Positions 2,842 to 55,930 of a DNA stretch of 64,000 nt are shown in pieces. The first letter of the stretch is position 1. The number at the start of each line of letters is the position of its first letter. Position numbers and translations under genes: made by a program. This DNA comes from Bugula neritina (taxonomy: Eukaryota; Animalia; Bryozoa): NCBI GenBank assembly GCA_964035545.1, contig OZ037767.1:21654628-21718627 (forward strand), in the 5' to 3' direction. The notes beneath the pieces are model-generated. The model made no database searches. It had not been told where the DNA came from and was given only the letters and a program-made list of their open reading frames with translations.

Positions 2842-3913
2842 ATGTCTTACGACAACAGATCGTGGGGTGAGTTAACTATATCTTAATATGAAACTAGATT
2901 GCATCGCTCAGCTCCGACTCACTGAGTCAATCGAGCTGGAGATAGGTTAGTGAAATACCGTAGTAAGAACTCAGTTTGACTTAGAGATTTTTATAATCTC
3001 ATTGCAATACGTGTTCTATCTGACTATTCACTGCCATAAATCTCTACGAGGTAACTGAATTAGGAGTTGCCAAGCTATTCAAGCTGACAACACGGCAGTG
3101 TACTGTATTAACACTGTTGAAACTTTTTCAGATTACACTCGACCCGCTACAACCAGGGTACGGGATAGAGCACTTCCCGCTCCGCATCCTGAGGAGTATG
3201 CCAATGGTGACCGGCCCGAGCCACTACGCCGCCGTTGGCGGTGGGTGTTTCCAGAAACAGAGGAAGAAATAGAAACGGCCTGGGGGTCCAGAGGACGGAC
3301 GAGATGCCAGATTTGTGGCGAAGAATGTGCCTCTCACCGCTCCTTGAAGCTACATGTTAACGCCCATCTCCTACTCACATTCTGCCCCTGCGGATACAAT
3401 GATGTGTACCCCTACCCCGTCACCAGACATCGAGCGGCGGGCTGTTTCTCTGGAGAGAATTATGTGGTTGACGTCAAGCTCTATCCGGAATTCCTCACCC
3501 TGATACGACCCCTAGTAAAGAAGGCAATGTTGTTGGCCGTCCTGACCTCGGGTTTCCAACGCGTATTAGACTATGCCAGACAACAATCCCCATTGGTATC
3601 TGACCGCCCTCAGATGGTGTACACCCCCGACGAGTTTGCCTATCCAGAAGAAGGAGAGGTCTCCCCCGCCCCGATGAAGAGACGAACCAGGTCTCCCAGT
3701 CCCCCTTTGCGCCGCAGACGGACACCGTCCCCAGACCCAGTTCGCCTGGCCACAGTAGAGGAACGCCTCCTCCGACTACAGGAGGAATTCACCCAGTTAG
3801 CACCGGATTTACTTAATACTACGACGGGGCTCTTCCAACTAAAAGGATCAGTAGGCCGGATGAAACGGAAATTGCGTACATGCCAAGCCAAGCACCGGCG
3901 TGCCCAACAATGA
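2842..3913 (+). CDS. Retrotransposon accessory ORF3: spliced zinc-finger / basic / coiled-coil protein (~268 aa; exons 2842-2866 and 3132-3913)
   Basis: ATG 2842 (MSYDNRSW), then phase-1 donor G|GTGAGT at 2867. Acceptor ACTTTTTCAG at 3131 restores the frame of ORF 3098-3913. Canonical C-x2-C-x12-H-x3-H finger, then CxC-x12-H-x4-C, KRRTRSPSPPLRRRRTPSP, and a Leu-rich heptad-like C-terminus. Confidence 0.72.
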
Positions 3914-27899: not shown

Positions 27900-29696
27900 T
27901 CCTACAGCCAGCATTCTGCCTCAATCATTCTAAAATATATGTTGGATTTATTACTAAATTACTGAAACCACTATAAAATATTTAACCCAGTTTACATTAA
28001 ATTGCTAATGTCTATTGGGCTGTGTGGGTGTGTTTATGCTACTTTTATAGCCTTTAACCTTTTGAACCTGATGACATAATTTAAGGGTAATCTTGCATAG
28101 TCCCAGTTTTTCTACTCAGAATGAATTGCGCCAGACAAAACAAAATAGGCATTAGTTTGAACAATTACGACCATATGAAGGGTGGTTTAACTGAACTGTT
28201 ATGTTTACCTTTATTAACCCCTTCGGAACCTAAACTGATCAGAATGGAGACTATGAGAGAGTTGTAGGAAGATTTAAATATCTTATGGATATGGTAGAGG
28301 ACAATAACAGATGTTGAGTGTTACTCTTGTGAAACACATGATACCTCTTATACAAAACATTCATTGCAAGGTCCCCCCCCTCCTCCATATGAAAAATGAT
28401 ACTTGGTCTATCAGTAAATAGCAAGAGGCAAAGGTTGGGGCTTTAAAAAGTTGAGAATAATATGATGCATCCAATAAATAGAATATTAGAAAAAAAGAGC
28501 CGTGCTATAACTGGTGTCCATGTATATTGTAAGAGGAGGATGAAGCAATTTGAAAGGTTGCAGACGTCCTAAGACTACTAGAATAGAAAAGAGAGAAGCT
28601 AAAAGATCGTGGTAGAGAGACACTTATATGAACTTTGGTTTGAGAAAGTATATGGTATATGGACAAGAGTGGTGCGAATCCGATACAACAACTGTCTTCA
28701 CTAACTGAGTGAGTGTCATGCAGGACAGCAACCCTAACAAGAGCAAGAAAAGCAAAAAACATAGTTATTTTCATAAATATAGACCAGCAGTTATAGCTGT
28801 AGTGAATGGGAGGTTATACTTAAAAAGTCCACAATCGTAATTTGATCACCATTTATCTTATAAAAATTTTTTATAGGCTATGTATTGGTTATTGTTTATA
28901 TTATAAAGGTTCACCACCCCCTCCCCCCTTTCTATAAAACTGCTAGCAATAATCTATCAAGTAGTATGATCTCTTGAGAAGACAACTCTCAATATGATGA
29001 ATAAAATATTATAATGTACTGAAATGCTTTTTAGGTAGACAACAGTAACACATTGGAATAAAACTGAACCTTACAGCAACTGAAACACTCCTGTGAAATG
29101 GTTAGCAGGTTGTGCAAACCATTTTTGGTATAAGTGCTACAGATATAACACTAGAATAACATATTAGATGAAAGTACTCTGGAATGCAAAGGCGTTATGT
29201 GAAACAGCTTAATAAAAAGTATATATTTGAAAAAAGTATTTCAAATGTCATAAATATGCAAATTATGGAATATTGCTGCACTGCAGCATCAATGTGTTGA
29301 TCATTTATGTAATATTTTACCTTATTTTATCACAAAACCATAGTATCAACTTACAATACTTAACAACAAGCTATTGTATATTATTTATTTATTTTCAAAA
29401 GCAGAAATATGTTATTTATTTTCCAAAGTATAGATAACAAACAACGATGTGCTGCCAAGAAACGAAATAGCTGAAGACCAAAGAGGAGTGAGCAGGATGG
29501 CACTACCTTGCGTTTACCCAGATGAATAGACTGTGAGTCAGATTATTGTGATTATAGCATATATACAATAGTTTACATATAATTATTATACTATACTTGC
29601 AGATTTGTATATACATCAAACTTGATGCCTTCCTGTGAAACCCATGCAAGTGAAAGTTGTAGTGCACATAATCCATAGCATACACAGCACACATAA

Positions 29697-30938
29697 TGAC
29701 TAGTAGGGGATATACAGCGACTAAAAGGTGATATACTGGGACTAATAGGTGATATACAGTGACTAGTGAGTGATATACTGGGACTATTAGGTGATATACA
29801 GTGACTAATAGGTGATATACAGTGACTAGTGAGTGATATACTGGGACTATTAGGTGATATACAGTGACTAATAGGTGATATACAGTGACTAGTGAGTGAT
29901 ATACAGTGACTAACAGGTGATATACAGTGACTAGTAGGTGATATACAGTGACTAGTCGGTGATATAGAGCGACTAGTAGGTGATATACAGTGACTAATAA
30001 GTGATATTCAGTGACTAGTGAGTGATATACTGGGACTAAAAAGAGATATACAGTGACTAATAGGTGATATACAGTGACTAATAGGTGATATACTGTGACT
30101 AATAGGTGATATACAGTGACTAGTAGGTGATATACAGTGACTAGTAGGTGATACACAGTGACTAGTAGGTGATATACAGTGACTAGTAGGTGATATACAG
30201 TGACTAGTAGGTGATACACAGTGACTAATAGGTGATATACAGTGACTAATAGGTGATACACAGTGACTAATAGGTGATATACAGTGACTAGTGAGTGATA
30301 TAGTGGGACTAATAGCTGATATACAGTGACTAGTAGGTGATATACAGTGACTAGTAGGTGATATACAGTGACTAGTAGGTGATATACAGTGACTAGTAGG
30401 TGATACACAGTGACTAATAGGTGATATACAGTGACTAATAGGTGATACACAGTGACTAGTGAGTGATATATAGTGACTAATAGGTGATATACAGTGACTA
30501 AAAGGTGATATACTGAGACTAATAGGTGATATACAGTGACTAGTAGGTGATATACAGTGACTAATAGGTGATATACAGTGACTAATAGGTGATAACACAG
30601 TGACTAATAGGTGATATACAGTGACTAGTGAGTGATATACTGGGACTAATAGCTGATATACAGTGACTAGTGAGTGATATACTGGGACCAGTAAGTGATA
30701 TACCGGGCTAATAGGTGATATACTTCAACTAGTAGGTGATATACAGTGACTAGTGAGTGATATATAGTGACTAATAGGTGGTATACAGTGACTAGTAAGT
30801 GATGTACAATGACTAGTAAGCGATATACAGTGACTAGTAGGTGATATACAGTGACTAATAGCTGATATACAGTGACTGTTAGGTGATCTACAGTTACTAT
30901 TAGGTGATCTACAGTTACTATTAAGTGATCTACAACAG
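29697..30938. repeat. 21-bp minisatellite (GGTGATATACAGTGACTA(G/A)TA), roughly 59 copies
   Basis: Directly visible; it generates the repetitive ORFs (VTVYHLL)n and (SHCISPI)n on minus. Confidence 0.97.
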
Positions 30939-33765: not shown

Positions 33766-36649
33766 ATGGAGTTACTTGAAGGTAAAGACGCCTGCATGAC
33801 TCTCAGTGCATTTGCTGTGCTCCTCCTAGTCGTCTACTATATCAGGACCCACTGTAAGAGATATCCGGCTGGGCCCAGAGCTCTTCCATTTATTGGCAAC
33901 CTCCACCAGATCAGACGCTCTAAATCTATCGTCAACTTCTGTGAACAAAACAGGAAAATCTACGGAGATGTATGTTTATATTGCACACACTTAATAAAGA
34001 ATACTGGACTAAACCATTCCTAGTTTTTTACTTACTACACTTTTTATGCTTTATTAAAAAAATACTTATTTAGGTGTTGAATATAACACCAGTTTGATTT
34101 TGAAATGATATTTATATTTTTTTAAATTTATCGCTATTTATTGCTACTTACAGGTATTTACCATAGAAATTGGCGGTACTAAGAGAGTGGTGGTCTCTGG
34201 CTATAAAGCTATGCATGAGCTACTAATACTACACGCAGACTGTACAAGTACCAGGTCAATAAAAGCCTTCACCAAAACTATCCAGGAAGATTCTAAGGTC
34301 AACCCTGGTAAGATATTGTAGTGTACGTGTAGATATAATTAGTTTGCATATTATTTACTGCGAAATCAAATCTGTGTTGTTAATTTAATTGACAAATATT
34401 AAATGGATTATTCAATTTAACTGTAACCAGTGGTTTTTACTCTCCAGGATTGGTATGGGCGCCATTTCCTCAGTGGAAGAACATCAGGAAGTTTGCATTT
34501 ACTGAGCTGAAGAAAGAAGGAATGGGGAAATCCATAATGGAGCTCCAAATCTTAGAGGAAATTGACCAGTACACAAGTACCTTTATTCAACCTAACCTCT
34601 CTAAGCCAATCAACATGCACCTAACACTTCCACAAGCTACTTGTAACATCATCTCCCAACTAGTGTTTGGCCGACGTTTTGAGTACAATGATGAAGAGTT
34701 CAACCGAATGATAAGCGCTCTAAATGAGTCCATGGGCCTCATCTCGCAGGCAACAACTCTCCGGAATATTCCGTTCATCAGCTTCCTCATGAAGTCGGTT
34801 ATTATGAAAGAACAACACTTGAAACGAGATGTCATGATTCCAACTATCCGAAAATACATTGAAGAACATAAGATGAGTTTAGACCCAGCCGCACCCCGTG
34901 ATCTTATTGATAAACTACTTATTGCTGCTAATTCACAGCATGGCTTTTCAGGTAGATAAATTATTGAATTGATAGAAATGCATAATATTGTATCATAAGA
35001 ACTATGCTTTATTTTGTCAAATTTTGAAAGAAAGGTCTATTCTTGCTTGTACATTGTAATAATTGCTTTTGCTAAGGATTGCTGACTTTAAACACTTATG
35101 TATTTGAACACAAGAAAGTATGTTCAACTAAACTTGCACAATTGTAGAGAGCAATGCTGCCTTTGTCAGTTTCCACCTGTATGCTGCTGGATCAGAAACG
35201 ACTGCAACGACTCTTAGATGGGCTCTGCTCTTCATGTGTAAACACCCTGACATTAAACGGATTGTTCAGCTAGAGATTGATGAACAAATAGGTAAGTCAT
35301 AATTCAACCAATTAAATATAACATCTACTGAATTTCTTACTTGCAATAATTACATATACAAAAAAAATTGTGTACTCAAATTCATTATGCACTGGTGCAG
35401 AATCTATTTTTTGCAATTGATGTGAACAGAAATTTGCTGTCTATGATTAATGGGCATGATTGTATTTTGTCTTTCTAATTGCCACTAGTTAATATTTTAT
35501 TAATTACAAATTTTATGCACAATGTTCAGGCCTGGACCATGCAGCCTCCTACAAAGACCATCTCCATATGCCGTATACAGATGCAGTGTTGATGGAAACA
35601 ATGAGAATCAGTAACGTCGTAGCTACGTCACTTCCCCATTACACTAGTGCCGATATCTTCATAGATGGAAAAGTAAGTCAATATTCAAAATGCTATATAA
35701 TTACTATTTTTTAGATTTGAAAATTATTTATAAAATTTCTTATTTCGTTGTTTTTGAATAATTAAAAACCGGTCGGAAACTATTTTCTTTTGTAACCAAA
35801 TCTTTTGTCTTTCCAGATGATTCCAGCAGATACTGAAATTCTATTAAACATGGCATCTGTTTTACACGATGAGACGGTGTTTGAGGACCCTACAAAGTTT
35901 AAACCAGAAAGGTACCTGACTGGAAATATAGCCTTGAAGAAGCAGAGAACTATTCCGTTTGGCATTGGTGAGTGCTACTTCTACCATACAAGGTGCAGCT
36001 ATGCTTTCATAATCACCATGGCAGGCAAATGTGACACAAACCTGATAAAACTGAAAACCGGACACCGATTTTAAGATAAACAAAATTGTTTTTGAACATT
36101 TCAAATGATGATGATTTATGAAGCATCGGAAGTATGTTCAATAATAAACCGTATGCACTATGTGTGGTTTTAACCTCTACATATGTATTTTTCTTGAACT
36201 ATTAATGGTCGCGCACAACCTAGCAACGGCTATTTGTCTTTTTAATAATGTTTTTTTGTTTCCTTTTTTTATGTACTTTGAAATCAGCTTCATGCTGTTT
36301 AGTTAGTAATTATTTATCAATTATCTCTGAAGCTATAGTGCATTTGAGCAACGGCTAAGTATTCGAGCAATCCGGTATTTCTTTTGTCCAAACATACAAA
36401 CTTCTGGCATATCGACACTAATAGATCATAGAATGTCTGTTTACAATCTATTTACTGTTTACAGGTAAAAGAGCTTGTCTGGGAGAGAGTTTAGCTAAAA
36501 TGGAGTTGTTTCTTTTCTTTGTGACTTTGATGCAAAAGTATGATGTGTGTCTGCCTCCCGAGTCAGCAGTAACAACAGACCCAGTTACAACATTATTAAA
36601 TATGCCACAGAGCTACGACATCCTTTTCTCACCTAGGGGTTACTTGTAG
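33766..36649 (+). CDS. Cytochrome P450, CYP2 clan, copy A, 494 aa (exons 33766-33969, 34154-34307, 34448-34951, 35148-35291, 35530-35672, 35817-35967, 36465-36649)
   Basis: N-terminal TM anchor, [13 protein letters not shown] hinge, WKNIR (C-helix), AGSETT (I-helix), ETMR (ExxR), FKPERY, FGIGKRACLG heme motif. All introns GT-AG and phase-consistent. Confidence 0.95.
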
Positions 36650-40085: not shown

Positions 40086-43000
40086 ATGGAGCGCATCACT
40101 GACACATTGCAGTGTCCCAGCACTCTTCTCCTGTCTCTCATTGCCAGCCTTGTATTTCTCAATCTTTATAAGAGAGCGACAAGCAGGTATCCAGGTGGGC
40201 CAACACCCCTGCCGTTGCTAGGTAACCTTCACCAGATCTTTTATTGCGGCTGCCTCATCAAGTTTTGTGAGAAATACCGAAGGATTCATGGAGATGTAAG
40301 TATAGCCTAATATTTACAAATTTGTCAACCTAAAGGTGACCGCCAGACGGCACCCTCAACATTTCTGAGTTCTGTTCACCGATTAACTGTTTTAAATAAT
40401 AATAATCAATATATATATAAATTTTTGTAGCAATGAAAATTCTATTACTATAGAATAAAGCAATTACTTTTGAACACAAATTTTACACTTGAGCTAAGCA
40501 AAAAGCTGCATACCTGCACCTAAAAGCAATTGCTGAAATTAAGTGCAGATCTTTGACTGTGTATGAAATTATACGGAAATTGAATGGCATCTTAACTTCA
40601 GAAACCAATTAGAGCATAGAATGCTAATCATGATAATGATTTGAGACAGAGAAACATAATTAAACCCTTAGTTATTGAAATAGAACCAAAATATGCATAA
40701 AACCTTATTTTTAACCAAATGTGTTATTGCAAAAGTCTATAATAATACTACGACCTCATATGCTGTTACAGTCACAGTTTAATATTACAATCCCACAAGT
40801 TATTACAGTCATAGTCTATAACTTTATAAGACAACTCTTTTTTTTCATTTGTTGTCTAGGTTTTCACTTTTGAAGTGGGAGGTAAAAAAAGAGTGGTGAT
40901 ATCAGGATATGATGCAATAAAAGAACTACTCGTGGATAACGCACAATACACAAAAACTCGCTCTCCCGCGAGTAGAGGGAAGTTGTTGACTCGTCATTAC
41001 AAAGATACTCCTGGTATTATATATAAGTTCAGTATTGTAGATTCTATAATTAGGCAGCAGCTGTGGTCTAGGGGTTAGAGCATTTGCTTAGTAAGCATGA
41101 AGTCATGGATTCGAACCCCGACAAAGGCCATTGGTGATGTTGAAAGGAGCATCCAATCATAACTGCTCCTGTGCCCCATCTGAATAATTGTCCTTAGCCT
41201 GATTCAACAAAAACCCTTCCATCAGGGGTTTCTCACAGAGATGGCGACTATAAACTTGCGTGATTTTATTGTAGAATCTATAATTGTAGTCATATTGTCA
41301 TTTATATATTATACAATCATACTACTATCTCATATATTTTGGTTTATAATATGCTTAGTGAAACTAATTACTGTGTCACCAAAAGATTAGATGTGACATT
41401 TGGTTGACCAGAAATGAAGCTCATGTTAGCTATAGATAAAACCCACCTGTTGTCCTAGCAACAGTTTTAATTATATTGTATACATAATATAACACGTAAT
41501 TATAAAATGTATTTTATATTCATAGTATGAAAGGAATGCCTTATATTTCTTGACTCCTAAAACTTTAAAAAAAAGTCAAGTCTGCTATTAATAATTATCT
41601 ACATGCATTGAGATCTATCTTTTTCAAAGCCTGACTCACTAGTTTTAAATAATTCTTTCTATTTGAAGTAAGCACCTCATATGTCAATACATAATTTACT
41701 ATATTATTATAATATATGATAGTGTTATGTATCATTTCTTAATTAAATATTGCAAGAAGATACAGGACAATATTATGTATTATGTAAAGTATTATAGCAA
41801 AGGTGACCAACTTTTTCAGACCTAGGGCCACTGAAAGGGAAAAATCAATTGACGAGAGCCACATTGTAAACTTTAGTTTGGGCTGGAGGGGGAGCCACAT
41901 CATTAGTAATTTTCAAAATACTTTATTCCGAAATTCTTATTAATAATTACACAATTAAGCCTTGATAGTTACTGCAGGCTGCATGCTTTGTGGCAGGTGT
42001 ATAATTTATAAGACATTTAAGAAAAGTTTTTCACTCTAATTCATATATGTGCAAAAATAATTTTATTTGCTATACCTTTGAGGGCCGCATAAATGTAGGC
42101 TGGGAACCACATCCGGCCCTGGGGCCGCCTGTTGGACAGCCCTGTATATTATAGAATAAAATGCAGCACAAAGCGATTTAATATACTGTAGCATAATGCA
42201 ATATACAATGTATTATAATGAAATATAGAACTATGTAGTTTTAATGTTGTAATTCAGTATTTTAAAGCATGCGCTATATAGTATATATTCTATAACATAT
42301 ATTACTATATAATAGAACACAACAATAAATACATTGGCCAACAGTGTAATAAAGCACAATGCAATTGCTATATACGAGTAAAGCCTACTGCTGTAAAGAA
42401 TGTGAGAATATTATTATATATAAAAGATTCTTTCTCTACATTAAATTACTTTTTACCATACATGCATGTATACCAGCTCTTAATAAAGATATATATATAT
42501 AAATTATCAGGGTTGTAAAGAGCTATAATAACTTGTTTTGCTAGATCTGGTTATCTCTAATTCAACATAAACATGTGGATGTAAAGCTCCCACGGTGAAA
42601 ATTGATAACAAATTTCTACGCTGACCGACTATTTTATCTGAAAAGTCTATTCTTAACCCTTACGGATCAAAAGACTATATATGTCCCTTTGACTTATATA
42701 CAAACAATAGCGCTTACTTTAAACTTCGAGCTTTTTATAAAGCTTTTGTTGGCCATATTATATGTTTCACTACTTGTGAACATCACAATATACTTGAGCT
42801 ACAGGGTTTTATTTCTTAGGTCGCAATTAGAGCTTCTTGTTCCATGCATAATTTCATTTGCCTGTGTTTTAAATTTCAGGCATAATTTACGCTTCTTACT
42901 CAAGTTACAAGAGACTAAAGTCTATGCTAATAGCGACAATCAAAGACGAAGGTCATGAACTCGAGGCTAAGATGCTGCAGGAACTGGAAGACTGCATGTC

Positions 43001-45977
43001 TCACTTTATAGAACCAAGTCTAAATAAGCCTGTTAATATAGAACAATGCATAGCCTTAGCTACAAGTAATATCATCAACCAACTCACAATAGGCAAGCGC
43101 TTTGACTACTGCAACCAAACCTTCATCACTTTACAGTTGAGTCTACAAGAATACCTTCGAGTGACCATACAGTGCGGGTTGGTAAGCAGCCTTCCTTTGA
43201 GTGATGCCTTCTTAGGACCAATGGTCTCTCGGTTCAACCACCATTACGAGCATTTCTCACTGCCAACAATCTCACAGCTCCTAAAGGAAATGAAAAGTAC
43301 CATGAATGTTGAAGACCCACACTATGTGATGGAAAGGTTTCTGGCTCATTCTCAGCGTCCAGTAGAGATTCAAGATCCAACTTACAGCGGTAAACATAAA
43401 CTGGAGTTATCTCAACGTGCAGGGTACATGCTGCAGTTATGGTGCTGTAATCAGCCTGTAGTGTGCAGACTGTACAATGTTTGGGAAGCTTTAATGTGAC
43501 TAAGCGCATGCATTATGCGCTTTTTCTCATATTGTTCTTCCTGAATAGCAAAAACTTACGGAAGGTGAATATAATACATGAAACATTGATGGATGACACA
43601 GTATCAGCATTAGAGCAAACTATACACAGTTTACAAAATAATGACTTAATTCTTTGCACAATCTCATTTAGCCATCTTTATGTATATTTTTGTATACCTA
43701 CATGATCCATAGACGTTTTAACAATTGCAAGCACTCACTATCGCCCACTATTGTGCACTACTGCTTGTTGTTCATGAAAGTTATGTTTCGTTTAATAACT
43801 TTTAATTTAAGAAAGTACACAGTTTTAATACTCATTTGTGTTTGTAATCTGTTTTAGAAGCCAATGCTCCATATTTCCTCTTCCAGCTGCTTTTAGGAGC
43901 CAGTGACACTACCTCCGCAGCCTTGAGATGGGCGTTTCTTTTCATTGGTTCTAACTTAGAGGTCAAGCTGAAAGTTCAACAGGAAATAGATAATGAATTA
44001 GGTCAGGTGTAACACAATTATCATCCCACAATTAACTTAAACACCTTAAAAGATTTCTAGCAATGCTTGTAACTGTGTAAAATTTAGAATATAAATTATA
44101 GTTTATTGATTATCAAAAATAATGAATAGAGTTAACCTAAATAACAGGCAGTAAGTCTAAAATCAATTAATTATTTTATATGTTACTAGTAAAAACACCA
44201 CTAGAAAGCAATTGTTCTACAGATTATTTTATGAATCATTTTAAATATATATTCTTTAATTATTTATAAATTATTCTATAGATCATTTTACGGATCATTT
44301 TATGGATTCTTCTGCAAATTATATTGTATTTCGCAGGTCAGGATCGGCTGCCCTCCTTCAATGACCTCCAACATATGCCTTATGTAGAGGCTGTGTTACT
44401 TGAGACTCTTCGTAGAGGCAGCATTGGCACTTTGTCTTTGCCTTACACGCTCACCGCTGACTGCGTTGTTAAGGGAAAGGTGTAGTAAACCAATAGTCAT
44501 CACTCTATTAATAGTTGTCACTATATTATTTTATAAAATTTTCAAGTGTGGATGTTTAAGGAAAATAGGAAAATCATACAGTGCAATAGGACTAATTATT
44601 GGAAATCAAAACAATTTTTTATCAAACTTATTCTTTTCTTAAATGATGAGCATTTGGTGGCGAATCCAAGTGATATAATTAAAAGTTGAAATTTTGGTAA
44701 AAGTCGAGTTTATTTGTTGGCGTTGGGCATAAAGGACGAATTACTGCTTTCATTATTATAAAACATGATCTTAAGCAGACTTTGTATAATCTTGATTTAG
44801 TCAAATTAAATCATTTGCAATAATATTGATTTTCAACAAAAGCAGAGCAAACATTTTGCTATTTTTACAGTTGATTCCCGCTGGATCTGATTTGATGATA
44901 AATTTCCTTTCTGTTTTACACGATGAGACAGTTTTTGAACAGCCTTTGAAGTTTAAACCAGAAAGATACCTGACTGGTAATATAGCTTTGAAGAAGCAGA
45001 GAACTATTCCATTTGGCATTGGTGAGTATTGAGTGTATCTTGCATAGCACTTACTGAAATAAAGAATATACACAACTACGTAATATGTACTCTATAACGA
45101 TGAAAGGCTGTATCAAAGATACTTAAATCTATCTTCTTTATTTATTACTTAAATTTCTACTAAAACACTTGCACTTACTAATAATAATTTTTTAATAAAC
45201 ATTTACCCCTGCAGCTACCTACATTTTGACCAATCATAACAATTGGTTTTACTTACATTTTGGTCAAAACACTTCAGATTGAATAAAAAAAGTAGTAGAT
45301 GTACCAAAAACAATTTGCTTCTAATACAATTTTTCATCATAATTCTGCCTGATAAAGCCAACACATATATCAGTTTACACCGTATCACAACACAGCTGTA
45401 CATGTGATCTTTTGGACTGTATTGCATCTCACTTTTCACACTCAGCATTCGAACTGAAATAGCTGCACCATATCATAGCTTGTTATACCTTACAGCTAGT
45501 GTTGTTAACTTCTATTGTGATGATGTTGTACCTCAAGGTAATAATATAGTATTACTATATGTTTTATTAGTATAACATAATGTAATAACACTATAACATA
45601 TTATATATATATCATATTATGTAATATTATACTGTATTACACCATATTTATATGGCTATGCAATTGCTACTATATTGTTGTTATTAATTATTACCATGCT
45701 TGCTAAATATATATAAATTGTGCTGCATTGCTCTATGTTTTTGCCTATTGTGATATCTTGAATACTACCAAACTATAAGATATTTTAATTACCTTTAGGA
45801 AAAAGATCTTGCCCTGGGGAGAGAATTGCTAAAATAGAATTATTTCTATTCTTAGTTAGTATTTTACAGAAGTATGACTTCACCCTAGTAAATCCACTAG
45901 ATTTATCCTACCCTGCTATTGATGTTGGCTCAGTATGCAGTCCATCACCTTATGACATCATATTCACTCAGAGATAA
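40086..45977 (+). CDS. Cytochrome P450, CYP2 clan, copy B, 496 aa (exons 40086-40295, 40860-41013, 42880-43389, 43858-44001, 44337-44479, 44871-45021, 45799-45977)
   Basis: Same 7-exon architecture as copy A, with identical lengths for exons 2, 4, 5 and 6. PGGPTPLPLLGNL, GASDTT, ETLR, FKPERY, FGIGKRSCPG. Confidence 0.93.
41056..41268 (+). mobile_element. tRNA-derived SINE, copy 1 (CYP-B intron 2)
   Basis: Pol III A box TGGTCTAGGGG and B box GATTCGAACCC. Body (GGTGATG..GAGCATCCA..GCCTGATT..GCGACTATAAACT) is shared with 59940-60152. Confidence 0.8.
41797..42144 (+). mobile_element. hAT (Charlie-like) MITE
   Basis: Right end GGCCCTGGGGCCGCCTGTTGGACAGCCCTG; degenerate left end CAAAGGTGACCAAC. 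About 130 bp match 52053-52187 in reverse orientation. Confidence 0.75.
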
Positions 45978-47166
45978 CACAACTTCTCAACTATATGTTC
46001 TACGCAAATATTTGCGTAAATAAAGTGACTGAACTTCACCTATGTTTTACCAAGAAGCACAAATGAAAGCATTGCGTGTTTCTACTAAATCATATACTGC
46101 TCTGTGCTTAGAGGTGCTAGATCGTTATTTTTCTAGATGTCACTTAATTTAACACGGAAAAATAAAAAGCTTTCAACACACACGTGCAACCCAAACAGTA
46201 AATACATTGGCAGATTTCAACAATGGCTATTTTAGTGGACGATGGTGTTATTATTTTTTCCTACTGTATAAGTTTCAGCAGCTTTTCACAACCTACTAGT
46301 TTGTCATGCGTATGGTTTATTAGATTTGATGTTGTATTTAAAAGATATATTTGGATATTGCACATATTATTGTAATAACTGCATTCTTTATTCATCTAAT
46401 ATATAGAAATACATTTTAAACTAAATCTTATAATTTATGATAAACTCAACAAAAATGACATTTTATTCTCAACATTAATTATGTTGACTTCAATAACAGA
46501 TATTGTGGGCTAATAACATCACAATACGAGAAAGAGAAGATAATTGGTTTTTCCAAAACATTAATGCTTTTAATGTTTATTGGTACTGCATGGTTACAAA
46601 ATAAAACTGTATATTTTTGCTGGAGAACATTTATTTATTTTTGTTATATATTAAAAATTGATTATAATAGTTATTTTAAATATATTTATGAAACTATACC
46701 ATTCTATGCCACCCGCTGTTGTCTCCAGTTGATCAAATTGTGCAAATTTTCATCATATTCTTTTTTGAGCAATAGTTTTTCACATGCTACACCATAAAAA
46801 ATTGAGATCACTTTTGTATGGTGCAGCATGTGAAAATTAACTATTTACAAGATGTTAAATCTTCCATGCTATAACTAGTGCCAACTAGTGGTCAACTTTT
46901 CTATTATTCATTACTTTTGGCCTTCACTTCATTATACTCAGTGCATTATAATGTCATCTTTTTTTAGACAATTTTAGAACTACTCTGAAAAGGAATTTCA
47001 TTCTGCCAAACTAAACTATAATGAGTGAGGAACTCATAATAGTTCTTAATCTAATTTGTTTACGGACCCGCACAGCTCATATTTTATAATTAGGTTTCCA
47101 CGGAGACTCTGGCTGAGCATAAACTTGTATGCACAGGAAGATATTTATCTACAACAGAACATGACA

Positions 47167-47187
47167 TAATATATATATACATATATA

Positions 47188-47264
<77 letters not shown>

Positions 47265-47407
47265 TATATGTGTGTGTATAAGTGTATGTACATGTATAAT
47301 ATGTGTATGTATGTGTATATATATATGTATTTGTGTATATGTGTGTGTGTATATATATATGTATATGCGTGTGTGTGTGTGTGTATATATGTATGTATAT
47401 ATGTATG

Positions 47408-47493
<86 letters not shown>

Positions 47494-47512
47494 CATACAT
47501 ATATATATATAT
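47167..47512. repeat. Compound (TA)n/(TG)n microsatellite
   Basis: Directly visible; a further (TA)n tract lies at ~47678-47721. Confidence 0.98.
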
Positions 47513-47675
47513 ACTGCTGGAAGAGAACATAATCTTGGTAATTAAAAAACTAAGTATGAGAATGTGGCAGTATGTTTCGAAATATTAATAGTACTAGTAG
47601 AATTTCCACCATGCTGATATGCTAAATACTATGTATTTCACGAGCATACAATGTAAAATTCAATTTACATTAGGA

Positions 47676-47725
<50 letters not shown>

Positions 47726-47985
47726 AAAGCTGTAATACAACAACTAAATATGATACAGAATGGAAACATGATTATAATAAATCTCCGACTTTCAAAAGAA
47801 AAAAATGTTATTTGCTTATAGTGACGCTATTATGAGATAACGCTTCATATTATTTTTAGTTTTTCCAGTTTTATTATAATTCTAAAACAATATATTTGTT
47901 ATAGCTATAGTATATATACAAAGAAATATCAAAATATTATTTGCATAAATGCTCGCACACAAATGGAAACCCCCTATTGCAATTA

Positions 47986-50900
47986 TTACTTAGGAGCTAA
48001 GGCTGTTATCTTGTTCATCCCCTTTGCACCCTTAGAGTCAACATAGTAGTGCTGTCCATTAGGGTGTCTTCTCATGCCATCTGGGAGTTGTTTGTTGTTA
48101 GGGAGTTTTCTCTCTCTAACGGAATCAACTCTCTTTGACTGGGCTCGGTTTCTCTTGGGCACACCTATGTAGCACAAAGCAATGACTAAATATGCTCGAA
48201 GTAGGAAGAAAAATAATTGTAGTTTGTCAAATATAATGTCAAAGCTATTTGAATTCATAATTTATTCCAAAAGGTTGTCTGACCACACAGCGAATTGCAA
48301 AGTTTTAGCCGTTGACACCAATCATTCTTTTATTTGCAAAAGCAAAAAATTGCTAATAATTGCCGAGATAAATATAGAATCAGTATAGCTCAATGGGGTC
48401 TAGAATTTCTGCAGAAGAACTTAGTAATATTTACTGTAAAATTTGCACCAGCTGTAGTTGTAATTTGCATACAAAAAAGCAATCCGCTGTACACAAAAGA
48501 ACAACATCAATTACCTGCCTTTATTAATTACTTTACCTAGTTATTTCTTGCATTTATTAATTTAGTTAATACATTCAATAATTACCTGCAGGATTTTTAT
48601 TAGTCTTCACTTCTTTTACAACCTTTTCTCGTTTTTTCCTGCAACAAAAATATTTTTAGAAATTGACAACTAGAAATGAATAAATTTACATGTGTATATG
48701 ATATGAAAGTATGTCTGATAGAGTTTTCTTCTCTTATATTTAAGCACACTGTCCTCATACTGTTTTGAAAAGAGTTGTATTTGCCATCTAATACATGATA
48801 TTTATAAATTTTTTACAACATTCTGCACTACAGTGCTCCCCCCCCCATATCTCACGGTTCCATTTCTCACGAAATCTTATAGGTCACAAGAAAGGCTTGC
48901 ACCCCCATTTTGTGGCTTATGTATGTGTGTATAGGAACAGAATGTTATGAATTGAGATTTTGAGACCCACAGCCTCGTGAAATATGAAGGGAGCTCTGCA
49001 CTTGCATTTCTCACCATCAGCACAATTCATAGTGCATAGACGCGCACACTGCACACAAACGGGTGTAAATCAAATTTACAAGTAAGCCAATATTAGAGAG
49101 TGGAGGCAAATACCCACATGTTCTCCTTGCCATGAGTTGGTTCTTTCTTACAGCAAAAAGAAAACTTAGCTAGACACAACTCATCAGCCACGATAGTTGG
49201 GTCAGTGATGGACCCCTGTTCACAGTCACCTTCCGGCATGCTCTTTCTGTAGTCCTTACCAGCCTGACAGCATTTTCCTACAGCACATCAACATAAAGTA
49301 ATGCAAATCAGGAACTAAGCTAACAAGTACTTGCCAACAATTTGAGTAAGAAGAGAGGTACAATCAGGTTAGCCTACTATCTTTCAAACACTTACTAGAG
49401 TTTTGCTTATTAGATTTTGATTTGGCAAAAGTCACTTCTAGCTTTGCCTGCTTCTCGTGTATTTCAATCTGTTGGCCAGTTTCATCTGGTATTTCTGGTA
49501 TTTCCTCATCCAGCTCAAGCTCAACATTCCTGTTAATTTAAATATCAACTTTCAATAACATTAATTGCTATCAAAAAGGGGCGGAGAGGAGGGAACAAAA
49601 GTATGTACTGGACATACCATGAAATTCCCTCACTATACTAAACTTGTTCATATAGCCAAGTAGATACATAATACTTACATAGATAAATCGTCCAACTTAA
49701 TGTTCTTTCTGCTTGATTTACTATTCTTGTTTTTGGTAAACTTCTTGTTACTCTTTTTAGAATGAGACAATTCCTTTTTGGGAGTTGTCTTCACTTTACT
49801 GACTGCTTTTTGCCCATGAGTCATCTGTTTGTAGCTTGACTTTTTATTCAAAGCCTTCTTCATTCCATGTTTTTTGCCCTTTCCCCTGGAAATAGAAATA
49901 ATGACATAAGACACACTAAATAGAATATACTCCTGCAACCAGTTGATAAACGATTTATAAATGCAAGTTGCCTACCCCCATGGCCAAGTAATCCAGTCAA
50001 AAGTAAAAATTAATATCTAATAATCACATATCTTGATCTATACCCAGGTTGTGTGACAAATTTAAACAATTTGATTTGCTGAGATATTAATAAGTTTATG
50101 AATGTTGCAGCTACCTGCAGGTGTCAAAAGATGTCATTATAGAAGCACTGATTGGTTAAATCATATTCACTATCTCCAGTAGACTAACCAAACCTAGTAG
50201 TTTATTTATGTTGACTTCTTTCAGTAAACAAATTTATTTATACAGGCTGGCTGATGTTAGGGAAGTTTTGCTAATTTTAGCAAACAACCCTAAAGCTAGA
50301 TTTGGCTTGTCTCCAACATTTTCATCACAAGACATTAATTTTGCAAAAATAGACACCATAAATACATTGTTACCATGCACCGTATTGATAGTAACAGAAG
50401 GTGAGATTTTGATTCGTGGCTATAAAAATTGAAACATATCAAAGCATCTAAAATCAACCAGACACCCTAGAGCAGGCAGGGGTGGGCAAGAGAAGTAGAA
50501 ACTGTTTTGCACATTCTGATTAGCACAGCATAGGCTTGATGGAAAATTACTTTATTATAATAAAATTTAATAAGTGTACAATCTTGTGGCCCTTCGTTTT
50601 GTCCGACTTCTAAACTTGATCCCCATGCAAAAGAAGTTGCCCCCCCTGCCCTAAGTTGAATTATATTAGATCTTATCTCATATTTATGACTTAATTAGAG
50701 TTTACTAATATAGTGATAACACTAACAGGATCTGCGTACAAGCTATTATTTATACTGTAAATTAAGTAGGCTACACACATACAACACATTAAGTATACAC
50801 ACCGCTTCTTATCTCCTCTGATTTTTTCACAACACTTGGCATGTATTTGCATGCACTTCTTGGAAACAGCAGAGCCTTTGAAATTCTTAAACACTGCGCG

Positions 50901-53697
50901 TGGCAGATAACATCTTTTCTCTGGCATCATTTCCCCAAAGATTATTCCAGTGGAGCAGCACAAACTGCTGTTCTTTTGATCTAAATAATAGTATGCACTT
51001 GGACTTTGGAATTGACTGTACCACAGTAAAATGACTCATTGCTCAGATTTGAAGAATAAGGTCAAAAAAATTGCAGTGCAAATAACGGAAAGGTTCAACA
51101 AAATCTTAAAATGTATAAAACTTGGGACATTTGCTGAATTCTGCTGATATTTGGCAGCATAACATAAGAGGTGAGATTGCTTGATATCTACACATGCATT
51201 ATTTATAAGACAAAGCAATCATATATGTCTCTAGCAAGTGGCAACTATAAGTACTTTGCTGCAATTGGATGGAGGCACCAAGAATCTTCACTGCTTAGAA
51301 TCTAGATTGTGCAATGTTGCAGTAACTAGATAGATAAAAATAATTAGCTAGATAAAAATTGTTGGTTTGCTCTACTTTTTTCCAGTGTGTCTTTAGCGCA
51401 TATTTTTTCTTAGGAGAATTATTCACCCCTTGAGCTTTTTCCTGTTGTACTCATTAGGCCTTGAAACAAGCCATTAAGGAGTACCACTGCCTGCTACTTC
51501 CTTGTTATCAGTAGAGAGAGCAAATTTTGAAGTCATGTGTGGTGTACATAATTTAAATATATTACTTTCTATTTAAACTTTGAAAGCAGTTTTCTGATTT
51601 GATGGTTAAAGTGCTATGAATTTTGAGCTTTTATATTGGTATGCAAAAAGATTGTTAAATAATCGAAATTCAATATATTTATCATAATATATCACAGCAT
51701 TAAAAATGAATACATAATTTTTGCTTAGCACTCCGTATTTTTTGAAGTTATCATTTCTTTCTTGAATGGAACAGCAATATAATATAGATGTGCCAAAATA
51801 TGAATTAATGCAGACTTTGAAACTTTTCAGACAATAAATGCTGACTTCTCCAACACATGTTACTTTTTATTCAAAGCAAAGGTTTTAGTGACATTGGGCT
51901 TTGAAGTTATAATACGATAGAAATTTATTTATTGAATGATTAGACTTCAACATCATTATCACAAGATGAACACTAGCCAACTTCGACCAGGAATCTTGTA
52001 TGCAGAAGGTTAGTCAGCTGTGAAATGAAAACTAGAGTTGGCTTTATCTAAGCCTGGGCTGTCCAACAGGTGGCCCCAGGGCCAGATGCGGGCCCCCAGC
52101 CTACATTTACGTGGCCCTCAAAGGCATAAGAAATAAAATTATTTTTCAAACATATGAATTAGAGTGGAAAACCATCTTTTAAATGTGCTATTTATACTAG
52201 TGTGTCACTTACTGGTGCACTCTGGAATTCACAAAGTTTTTGATTGTAACAGCCTTAAGACTTTAGACAAGAAATTTACACGTTACTCACCTTCAATCTC
52301 CTCAACTGTTGAGTTGGAAATCAGACTATCGGCCAAGTCACTTATTATTACATCATCTAAGTCAGTTTTGTCATCTTTCAAGGCTACAGCCACACGACTC
52401 TTTAATTTCAACATAACCATGTTAATCTGTAAATACAACTTTTTATATACGTACATCAACTATAACTTCAATATACTTCTATTATCTACAGTAGGTAGGT
52501 CTCTATAGCTTAGTTCAATTTAAATTTTCAACAGATTTTGTTTAAACATTAGTCAATCATCAGCAAGGTTTAATTTGTTGGAGCTGATGAAGAAATATCA
52601 ACATATATGATCTGTAAATTGAAGCCAGGGTTGTTTAGATGACAGATCCAGTTCTAAGTGACACTTTTACTGCTATTATACTGATAAACTAAGTTATTTT
52701 GGTTTATTCAGTAATTCATTTAAATGAATTGATTTTTAAGCCATTAGTTGTCAAAGGTTTATGCCAAGTTCCCAGCTTCTCCAGGAAAGTAAACCGACTC
52801 ACAGCGTCGTCATCAGTCATGTTTGCCAGGTCCTCCATTTCTATCACTTCAGGGGCTGCAGGTTTGGTTAGTTTGAAAAATTTCGTTCTCATTCTGGCTC
52901 CATCAGAAAGTTTGCCACTTTTAGCTTTGCCTATAATTTAAAAGAGAATAAATACGTATTCTAATTTTATGTTAAAAAGAATTATCAGATAGACTGGACA
53001 AATCAAACTTCTTATTTGAGAAAAAAATTAGACTCCCAAGTGTTTTTTCCATTGTACTACTACCAGTTCTATCATAATCGCAATTCCAATTAATAGCAAG
53101 AAATGATGCAGCTGTATCAAAAATAAAGCCAACAGATTCTAACCTAGCATTTTGACACACTGATACAATCAAGTTGATAATCAGAAGTTTAAGGTTTGGC
53201 TGAGCAAAACATTATGATTACACTGTTTTCATTGTGTTACTATAGAAGAACCTATAATACTAATTCAGTAATTGTAATACTAGTGGACAATTTTTGGTAA
53301 TCACTATAATTAATATTATAATAATAATAGTTCAACTAGATTAAATTTTATGTTTTGAAGATATCCAACATCCAGGAAAATAAATGATAGTTTATGAGGT
53401 AGGTGCTGTAAAACTAAATCAAAATGTAATGGAAATATTGAGAAAGCCTGTGTTCTAGATTAAAAATGTAGCAAAAGTTACGCTCTAGAATTCTCTAGAA
53501 TTTCAACCCGTGCTCCAAACCAAAATATCTGCAATTTGCAATTTGGTTGACTACACTTACAGCCTACACTTTCACTATCACTATGACTATCAAAAAACAT
53601 AAAATAATATCTTGGACTTACCCAACTTTGTGGAATCTTTAGAAGAAACCACAAACAGTAACAGAGAAAGTGTGAAGAGAATATAATACCCGCGCAT
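47986..53697 (-). CDS. Predicted secreted Lys-rich protein with two anaphylatoxin-like (fibulin/C3a-type) modules, ~416 aa (exons 53697-53622, 52930-52803, 52426-52291, 50980-50803, 49885-49679, 49529-49396, 49277-49118, 48638-48586, 48164-47986)
   Basis: Nine exons join with GT-AG introns and consistent phases (1,0,1,2,2,1,2,1) with no stop. Signal peptide MRGYYILFTLSLLLFVVSS. Two CC-x2-G-x11-C-x15/18-C-x6-CC modules. The last exon is uncertain (possible further exon 46984-46954). Confidence 0.8.
48831..48998 (+). mobile_element. Tc1/mariner-like MITE (a truncated relative lies at ~54157-54288)
   Basis: TA-CAGTGCTCCC...ATATCTCACG / CGTGAAATATGAAGGGAGCTCTG inverted ends. Internal CTCACGGTTCC and TTTTGTGGCTTAT are shared with the 54.2-kb copy. 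Confidence 0.7.
50476..50648. mobile_element. hAT-type MITE
   Basis: TIRs CAGGGGTGGGCAA...TTGCCCCCCCCTG. Confidence 0.7.
52053..52187 (-). mobile_element. Truncated hAT MITE, same family as 41797-42144
   Basis: GGGCTGTCCAACAGGTGGCCCCAGGGCC...CCCAGCCTACATTTA.GTGGCCCTCAAAGG matches the reverse complement of 42010-42144. Confidence 0.8.
53396..53527 (-). mobile_element. MITE family A, copy 2 (partial, inverted)
   Basis: TTGAGAAAGCCTGTGTTCTAGATTAAAAATGTAGCAAAAG...AATTTCAACCC...CCAAACCAAAAT. Confidence 0.75.
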
Positions 53698-55930
53698 TGT
53701 GTAGGAATCTGTTATCGTTAAAACACTGCAACTTCAGTGTAACAAAGCCGTGAGTGTTATCAGAGAGTAAAACAGGCTCCGCTGATGTGCCGCCTGTGAC
53801 TACAGCTCTGAACGAATAACTGACACTTTCATAGAGTTCACTCGCTACGTCACAGTTTATTTACACAATAGTGTTTATGATTGGTTGGTGCTCTCCGTCT
53901 AAAATACACTGCTTATACGGAACTGCTCCCTTGTATGCTATCTAGCTCAGCCACTACTACAGGCTGCAGTTATAAGAAACCATTACTAAATCAATTCAAC
54001 ACAAAGAAATCATTTTTCATGATTATATGGATGGTTTTCAAGTGTTGGATCACAGCAATGATACAACCAACATTGTTGATTAGGATGTGCTCCTTTTGTC
54101 ACTCTACAATTAAATACCAAATGTTGAATTTTTAGATGTTTACTGTAAAAGCTGTAAAAGCTCTCCCTCTGTACCTCACGGTTCCTTTCTTGCAAAATTT
54201 CTTAGACCACGAGAAGGGCCAAAACCTGTTTTGTGGCTTATTTATGTGCGTGTGTGTGTGTGTGTGTGTGTGTATATAGGGACAAAATAACCAAATCTAA
54301 TAGATCCACCAGTTAAATCTGTTATTTTACTATGAAACGAATTGGGGTGAAATCTGGAGTGAGTTTGCACTAAGTATTTCAAAATCTGAAATTGGTTGAA
54401 TTCAAAGATTTGCAGCAAGCCAACTAACTTTTTTAAACTTTTGTAATTCAATAATAACGGTATAACCACTGCTTACAAACTATAACATTCAGAATTGTTA
54501 TCAAAGTTTCAACATAATTTAGTAAATTACTGTCTCAAGTCAATGTAATTATACAGTCATACTCTTGTCAGATAAAGAATTTGCTGATAACAAAACCATG
54601 TTTGTAGAGTTGAATCACCAACTTGAAATAGCTTAGGAAAAGCAGGAGTTGGCCTTACGAAACAATAGATTCATGCTTCAACTGCACACCATATGAGCAA
54701 TCGTATTGAACTAGTAATTTGCCACCCACAAACTTATGTCACTGGTAAAACTATCCAAGATTTTATTACTTGCGTCTGTTTTCAATCAGAGCTGTTGCTT
54801 TGAATTAGTTACTTATTTGCTATCTAAATTTCGAGTGGAAACAATACTACCCTTGAAAGATATCTTTATAGGACCTTATGCCATATCTGGTTACTGAATT
54901 ATTCAAGTAATAATATTAATCAAAAGTGGCACCATCTGTACTAGTCTCTTTCAAATAAAATCTTGTGAGTACAGCTTTGATGAGAGCTGAGTGCATCCTC
55001 AGCCTGTCTTGCTAAGTTAACTCTAGCAAATAAGAGCAGAAAACGAGGTTTTCGAAGAATTATTCCCAAATGAAAGTTTGGTTGCAAATAAACGGAAAAT
55101 TGAAGCTATGCTTTGTTCAGTGTTATACTTATAATAGATTATTACGGTACGTATACAATACAGCCTTAGGTGATAAGCCTGCACTTGTTGAGCTGTAGAA
55201 AGCCAGTTTACGGTTGCAACTTAAATTAATAGAAAACACATTTGTTGCCTATCATTCATCACATATGCATAGCCTTCAATTATACACTCCAGCTGCTAGC
55301 TATGCTAAGAACTGGTAAACAAAGTATTATATAACTATATCAATTTTGAGAAGACAACTACCACCATAATCAAGTTAAGGTACAAATAATATAGAACACA
55401 ATCTATAGAGCTATTGCGTATTATAGCTATATTATACTAGGGTGTACGGTGTACCATATATTTGTATATACATGTATATCACTCTAGGGTAGGCTACCTC
55501 TATCAGACCCTATTAGTTGCCCTGTAATTACAATGTTACGTTCATCACCAGTAGTTTATGGTCAAAAACTCTTTCATGTGTACAAGCATCTATTCTATGC
55601 TATTCATACTCCTCATGATTCTACTCACCATGTATACAAGTTGCAATGGTATACTCTGCTACAAATTAATGTTATATTAAGCTACACATTGACCTTTATG
55701 CTTTAGATATATTCTGGAGATGACATAGCAGGGTGTTGGGAGTATTTATACAGGTCAGATAACTTTTGCAGCCTCTGTTAATCCAACATCATATACCTAT
55801 GATGGCTTGAGAGCTAGACAAAGTGGTGAGGTAAAGATAAACTTGAAGAAAAGCTCTGTATGCCAGTAATTCTTGGTAAAAATGCAATGCTCTCTTTAAA
55901 ATGAACAAATAATGAGACATTAATCTTAAA

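Follow-up and report, generated by a model that had tools for sequence, protein, structure and literature searches.

The stretch of DNA from the cheilostome bryozoan Bugula neritina analysed here (the window; 64,000 nucleotides of contig OZ037767.1, positions 21,654,628 to 21,718,627 of the forward strand) carries on its minus strand, from window position 53697 to 47986 (about chromosome piece C3:21,702,613-21,708,324), a chain of nine exons that, on the evidence of its sequence, is a real protein-coding gene maintained by selection. Its product is predicted to be a secreted, highly charged protein that contains two six-cysteine modules, and the reading favoured here, with a probability of about 0.45, is that of a lineage-restricted secreted polyampholyte of the extracellular matrix, the cuticle or an adhesive, in which the modules form disulfide-locked helical units. 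A first-pass annotation of the same DNA had assigned the modules to the anaphylatoxin family (ANATO, PF01821), to which modules of complement C3a, C4a and C5a and of the fibulins belong. This label reflects a resemblance in the cysteine framework with weak structural backing, and membership of the family is not established, since every ANATO sequence test failed and the fold test was weak. The gene is an orphan, and not a demonstrated new anaphylatoxin system; its value at present is that of a well-supported model of a gene on which purifying selection acts.

Gene model and purifying selection

Rebuilding the exon chain from the sequence reproduced the phase-consistent nine-exon model of the first-pass annotation at exactly its coordinates, with GT-AG introns throughout and a coding length of 1251 nt (416 codons and the stop TAA). 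GT donors and AG acceptors are found at all eight introns, seven of the eight donors beginning GTA or GTG, and the 416-codon reading frame is free of stops. Exon 1 (53622..53697; all exons are on the minus strand) opens with the ATG at 53697 and encodes a signal-peptide-like start; its donor, GTAAGT, is in phase 1. In exon 2 (52803..52930) a basic stretch gives way to an acidic one (KAKSGK...EMEDLANMTDDDA), and an NMT may be N-glycosylated; exon 3 (52291..52426) encodes a further acidic stretch of amphipathic appearance (...KDDKTDLDDVIISDLADSLISNSTVEEIE), and there is no Pfam match in either. Exon 4 (50803..50980), which begins in phase 1 and ends in phase 2, encodes module 1 and, after it, EKIRGDKK(R). 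Of the 68 residues of the Lys-rich block in exon 5 (49679..49885), 22 are Lys, and exon 6 (49396..49529) encodes an acidic block (NVELELDEEIPEIPDE...) with KSKSNKQNS after it. Module 2 and the adjoining KKEPTHGKEN are encoded by exon 7 (49118..49277), which has the same phases as exon 4 (1 to 2), and the chain is completed by the short, basic exon 8 (48586..48638; KKREKVVKEVKTNKNPA) and by exon 9 (47986..48164), which encodes the basic tail and contains the stop TAA at 47988-47986. An AATAAA polyadenylation signal is present on the same strand at 47870..47875, 111 nt 3' of the stop codon, and at the other end of the gene a stop lies in frame 12 codons 5' of the ATG. The exons have a GC content of 0.40 versus 0.33 for the introns; at the base composition of the introns a stop would be expected every 13.5 codons, and each of the larger exons would be open by chance with a probability of 0.005-0.04.

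The 416-residue product contains 70 Lys, 19 Arg, 53 Asp or Glu and 12 Cys, with its charges in alternating blocks, and all 12 Cys are located in the two single-exon modules (exons 4 and 7). The N-terminus (MRGYY, a hydrophobic core of 13-15 residues, and VSS before KD) was judged by eye to be a signal peptide; it is followed by a mixed and acidic region, module 1, an RGD and the Lys-rich block, an acidic block, module 2 and the basic tail, so that acidic blocks are located before both modules. The RGD is at residue 168, directly after module 1. KKR comes after the last Cys of each module, at a distance of 8 residues for module 1 and of 14 for module 2, RK stands immediately before module 2, and no furin motif of the type R-x-K/R-R is found in the whole product. 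Every segment of the secreted, charged architecture proposed in the first-pass annotation is present as described there, including the density of Lys in exon 5, the acidic segments and the basic tail, and the same is true of its basic clusters (RK before module 2 and KKR after both modules).

Evidence for selection comes from a single related sequence. A profile of both modules, when compared with 1.84 billion representative proteins, gave one match only, a fragment of 41 residues (P0001; E 2e-16) that corresponds to exon 7 of a relative. Its source is a 981-bp metagenome contig from JGI (L003), which is genomic, colinear with window 50111-49103 (exons 5 to 7) and 86.8% identical to it. At this level of identity the contig comes from a diverged, though close, relative, with a synonymous divergence (dS) of about 0.2. 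Neither exon 5 nor exon 7 contains an insertion or deletion relative to L003, whereas introns 5 and 6, and intron 4 as far as it is covered, have 4-9 each. In the frame of the model, the differences in exons 5 to 7 amount to 17 synonymous and 7 non-synonymous changes (9 and 4, respectively, in exon 5; 5 and 1 in exon 7), with a ratio of non-synonymous to synonymous divergence (dN/dS) of 0.08 and a Fisher p of 1.6e-8, and in the two other frames dN/dS is >1. All six module 2 cysteines are kept in L003, one of them through a synonymous TGT-to-TGC change, and of the eight splice sites covered seven are kept as well, among them the acceptors of exons 5, 6 and 7 and the donors of exons 5 and 7. The low dN/dS in the model frame only, the indel-free exons 5 and 7 and the kept splice sites together show that exons 5 to 7 encode protein in the predicted frame, and this part of the earlier model is thereby borne out. 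Scans of metagenome DNA with exon 4 and with exon 9 returned no relatives.

About 165 nt 5' of the ATG, a TATA-like TAAATAAA adjoins a CRE-like TGACGTAG motif (window 53850-53870, minus strand; recognised by eye), and the pair may be the core promoter of the gene. Within the introns, contig depth in the one public DNA run that contains the locus rises to as much as several hundred times that of the surroundings at 48780-48979, 50380-50779, 51980-52179 and 53380-53579; summed depths of this order point to high-copy repeats, probably transposon fragments, in introns 1, 3, 4 and 7.

The six-cysteine modules and the anaphylatoxin family

Both module sequences quoted in the first-pass annotation occur exactly as given, each within one exon. 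Module 1 has the pattern CC-x14-C-x18-C-x6-CC (Cys 121, 122, 137, 156, 163 and 164) and module 2 the pattern CC-x14-C-x15-C-x6-CC (Cys 289, 290, 305, 321, 328 and 329). Common to the two are the framework CC-x2-G-x6-MPE-x2-C...C-x6-CC and the exon phases, and in a direct comparison by BLASTP they match with an E of 0.002 over the first half (CC-x2-G-x6-MPE-x2-C), all six Cys being aligned. The six-cysteine modules are therefore related, as had been proposed, and by these similarities they appear to be old duplicates of one exon. A wider internal duplication, in which an acidic-module-basic unit would be present twice, was ruled out, because exon 3 versus exon 6 and exon 5 versus exon 9 are without significant similarity. 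With regard to charge, module 1 has a net value of about +6 (from its residues), whereas module 2 is near-neutral and not cationic.

Of the whole product, only the modules are likely to be folded, and small helical hairpins or bundles locked by disulfides are their most probable form. The AlphaFold2 model of module 1, which is of low confidence (predicted local distance difference test, pLDDT, 62.8; predicted template modelling score, pTM, 0.44), contains helices at residues 3-17, 27-32 and 40-54, with the CC pair on the first helix, Cys3 in a loop and Cys4-6 on the last helix. The corresponding model of module 2 is non-helical (pLDDT 52) and unusable.

The cysteine order CC - C - C - CC is the same in both modules as in ANATO, and one explanation is true ANATO descent, by which the modules would be diverged copies captured from a C3-like or fibulin gene; this is a claim about ancestry that is compatible with either of the functions considered below, and it is possible, with the odds somewhat against it. 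In addition to the order of the cysteines, both modules have the CC-x2-G start and the C-x6-CC end, and the helix and cysteine placement in the module 1 model agrees with the arrangement described for module 1 of fibulin-2 (PMC11220139). The loops, however, are 2-6 residues longer than the canonical ones: the cysteines of fibulin-2 module 1 are C435/436, C449, C462 and C469/470, i.e. a spacing of 12/12/6 (PMC11220139), in comparison with 14/18/6 in module 1 and 14/15/6 in module 2, and only the final C-x6-CC agrees. Also against such descent is the silence of all sequence searches. No family was matched at E<=10 when both module exons were compared with Pfam-A by hmmscan, PF01821 (gathering score 21.4 bits) included, so that the Pfam ANATO match for which the first-pass annotation had looked to HMMER did not materialise. 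A six-frame search of the whole 216-Mb genome with PF01821 gave 0 matches, and so did, at E<=10, phmmer with each module and hmmsearch with a joint profile against all PDB sequences, among which are those of C3a, C5a and fibulin-2.

Structural comparison is more favourable to ANATO descent, to a limited extent. Among 48,161 chains compared with the module 1 model, the top 50 include the AT region of fibulin-2 (8r5w; Z 3.7, root-mean-square deviation 3.0, 44 residues aligned, 20% identity), which is the best ANATO row, and C3a (4hw5; Z 3.2, 49 residues aligned, 22% identity). No row in the comparison has a higher identity than these two, yet their Z values are tied with those of unrelated helical proteins and lie in the noise range. 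Foldseek against the PDB, a second look with VIA and an ESM Atlas shape search returned nothing meaningful for the module 1 model, and the module 2 model, which is too poor to count as evidence, was matched by nothing at Z>=2 in a wide VIA search. The AlphaFold and Foldseek comparison envisaged in the first-pass annotation is thus divided, with a helical module 1 and weak ANATO rows (Z 3.2-3.7) on one side and an empty Foldseek result and an unusable module 2 model on the other. The same holds for the anaphylatoxin assignment as a whole, of which the cysteine order and the weak fold match survive, while Pfam, the PDB sequences and the loop lengths speak against it. The chance that module 1 has an ANATO-type fold is judged to be near one half. 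Module 2 contains C-x3-F-x2-CC, and CEQ after Cys3, which are features of C3a/C4a/C5a as well and would fit ANATO descent.

Compared with the AT modules of fibulin-1 and fibulin-2 (PF01821; 8r5w), the present modules have the same six-cysteine order and C-x6-CC end and the same predicted layout of a helix (CC), a loop (Cys3) and a second helix (Cys4 and CC). The presence of more than one module in a secreted protein is a further likeness, and the dimerisation of fibulin-2 through its AT region corresponds to the role suggested here. The differences are the missing Pfam and sequence match, the loops of 14/18 and 14/15 residues as opposed to about 12/12, the charged linker of ~125 residues between modules that in the fibulins are fused head to tail, and the absence of cbEGF repeats or a fibulin C-terminal domain after the modules. 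The likeness to C3a/C4a/C5a (4hw5) consists of the cysteine framework, the cationic nature of module 1, basic residues downstream of each module and the weak structural match of the module 1 model to 4hw5. In contrast to these complement fragments, the present modules are not part of a thioester or alpha-2-macroglobulin-type protein, there is neither a convertase-type site nor a C-terminal effector end resembling LGLAR/MQLGR, sequence similarity is not detectable, and module 2 is not cationic.

The first-pass annotation had also stated that a thioester or cbEGF context is absent, and this is upheld by the stop codon, the polyadenylation signal and the sequence beyond them. On the minus strand of the window, no EGF-like or other Cys-rich exon was found beyond the 3' end of the gene, and the genes that come next in that direction are represented by P450 exons on the plus strand. 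Continuation of the transcript into EGF or fibulin domains was considered and ruled out, the open reading frame ending in exon 9 with TAA and AATAAA in succession. From the end of the reading frame in exon 9 and the lack of EGF-like exons downstream, it follows that the gene is neither a fibulin nor a thioester protein. Genes of the A2M family are present on other chromosome pieces (C2:17.63 Mb, C2:20.13 Mb, and C4:4.53 and 4.55 Mb), and in one of them (L004) no CC...CC exon lies between the parts for the A2M_BRD and A2M domains, which is a further point against ANATO descent. Given 0 ANATO matches in a genome with A2M-family genes, either an anaphylatoxin domain can no longer be recognised in the bryozoan thioester-type proteins, or introns divide it.

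Proposed function of the product

In the favoured reading, the protein would work outside the cell as a polyampholyte component of matrix, cuticle or adhesive. Its long basic and acidic blocks, presumed to be disordered, would bind partners of opposite charge, or one another, electrostatically, and the cysteine modules would serve as stable knots for self-association, in the manner of fibulin-2, a matrix protein whose AT region mediates its dimerisation (PMC11220139). The RGD beside module 1 could make contact with integrins. Comparable charge patterns are known from marine adhesive and matrix proteins, for which barnacle cement cp19k/cp20k and the polybasic and polyacidic cement proteins of the sandcastle worm are examples. 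Like these, the present product is secreted, lineage-restricted and Lys/Ser-rich, has separate basic and acidic blocks, contains few aromatic residues and confines its Cys to small modules. It differs from them in that it is not known to resemble them in sequence and has no repeat motif, no DOPA-type richness in Tyr and no runs of phosphoserine, and its link to an adhesive gland or to the cuticle is a proposal from composition.

Several observations weigh against this reading. Composition is the sole basis on which a matrix or adhesive function may be proposed, and the composition is itself imperfect in this respect, with only 7 Tyr in the product and no repeat motif typical of known adhesives. 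The RGD is read in this one genome only, and a processing model would account for the KKR after both modules equally well. With regard to the modules, the modelled helices of module 1 carry the low confidence given above, module 2 is not helical in its model, and in the structural comparison of module 1 no Z reaches 5. As for the gene, L003 covers exons 5 to 7, so that exons 1 to 4 and exons 8 and 9 follow from the internal logic of the sequence alone. The only public sequencing run that contains the locus consists of genomic DNA contigs in which the introns are covered and no splice joints occur, and it offers no RNA support for the chain or for its expression. Moreover, L003 is without 19 nt at the exon 6 donor (window 49387-49405 versus L003:690-700), so that exon 6 is deprived of its 3' end and of the GTAAGT donor; the GTGAGA donor that remains at the junction of the gap (GATAA|GTGAGA) does not match the phase of exon 7, and an in-frame TGA comes after it. 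The gap, the donor of the wrong phase and the TGA suggest that the copy in L003 is broken, spliced differently or mis-assembled, though the flanking exons bear the signature of strong purifying selection.

The want of RNA support in that run, the failure of the L003 copy to join exon 6 to exon 7 in frame and the absence of homologues elsewhere in the protein searches would all fit a decaying or mis-modelled locus, i.e. a gene that died recently, or a chain into which some exons of another transcript have been drawn. This is very improbable in view of the dN/dS of 0.08 and the restriction of changes in Cys codons to synonymous ones, and it is also at odds with the good splice sites and matching phases of all eight introns and with 416 codons uninterrupted by a stop.

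The basic clusters around the modules bear on a different alternative, that of a peptide precursor. Once the signal peptide has been removed, proprotein convertases would cut at the KKR after the modules and at the RK before module 2 and so free antimicrobial or signalling peptides, C3a-like in function, namely two disulfide-rich helical peptides of which one would be cationic and the other near-neutral, with the acidic blocks as neutralising pro-regions. C3a is itself cationic and antimicrobial. The position of KKR past each module and of RK directly before module 2, the acidic blocks ahead of both modules, the net charge of module 1 (about +6, like that of C3a), and the cysteine framework with its weak structural match to C3a all agree with such processing. 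It is nevertheless unlikely, because there is no basic site within ~30 residues N-terminal of module 1 and a furin motif of the R-x-K/R-R type is found nowhere in the product. In addition, the Lys-rich block of 68 residues does not obviously serve as a spacer, only module 1 of the two modules is cationic, and an ANATO sequence signal is missing from the Pfam and PDB searches.

The proposal of the first-pass annotation goes further still and combines genuine anaphylatoxin-fold modules outside complement and the fibulins with cleavage at KKR into C3a-like peptides, i.e. a complement-independent anaphylatoxin system in a bryozoan. This combination is very improbable, and the release of peptides is speculation, the site required N-terminal of module 1 not being found. 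Should the modules prove to have the anaphylatoxin fold, the protein would provide the first architecture with free-standing modules of this kind among charged, disordered linkers. In a phylum where the study of immune and matrix proteins has barely begun, it would extend the range of uses of a fold that is otherwise bound to complement and the fibulins. If they do not have this fold, it is one more lineage-restricted secreted cysteine-module protein and, in keeping with the favoured matrix, cuticle or adhesive reading, still a candidate for the biology of the bryozoan cuticle or larval adhesive.

Distribution and neighbouring sequence

No paralogue of either module was found in the 216-Mb genome by single-sequence or profile searches. 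A word-index protein search with the 114-residue open frame of exon 4 gave no candidates, and feature searches of the ESM Atlas with exons 4 and 7 gave nothing usable. By these searches, the sensitivity of which is limited by the shortness of the queries, the gene is likely to be confined to the Bugula lineage.

The window as a whole is animal DNA with a GC content of ~33%. At its beginning, a 734-residue open frame (77-2281, plus strand) contains the RNase H and integrase domains of a Gypsy/Ty3-type retroelement, with a local GC content of 0.52-0.56, and is followed by a 271-residue open frame at 3098-3913 (plus strand). Two long exons at 34450-34959 and 42924-43499 (both plus strand) each align with positions ~93-252 of the Pfam p450 profile, and this shared region suggests two tandem cytochrome P450 genes on the strand opposite to the present gene. 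A long tandem array of a 21-nt unit, of minisatellite appearance and open in two frames (YHLLVTV... and SPISHCI...), is located at 29503-30598 (minus strand), and a microsatellite rich in TA/TG closely follows the nine-exon gene on its 3' side, at 47090-47588.

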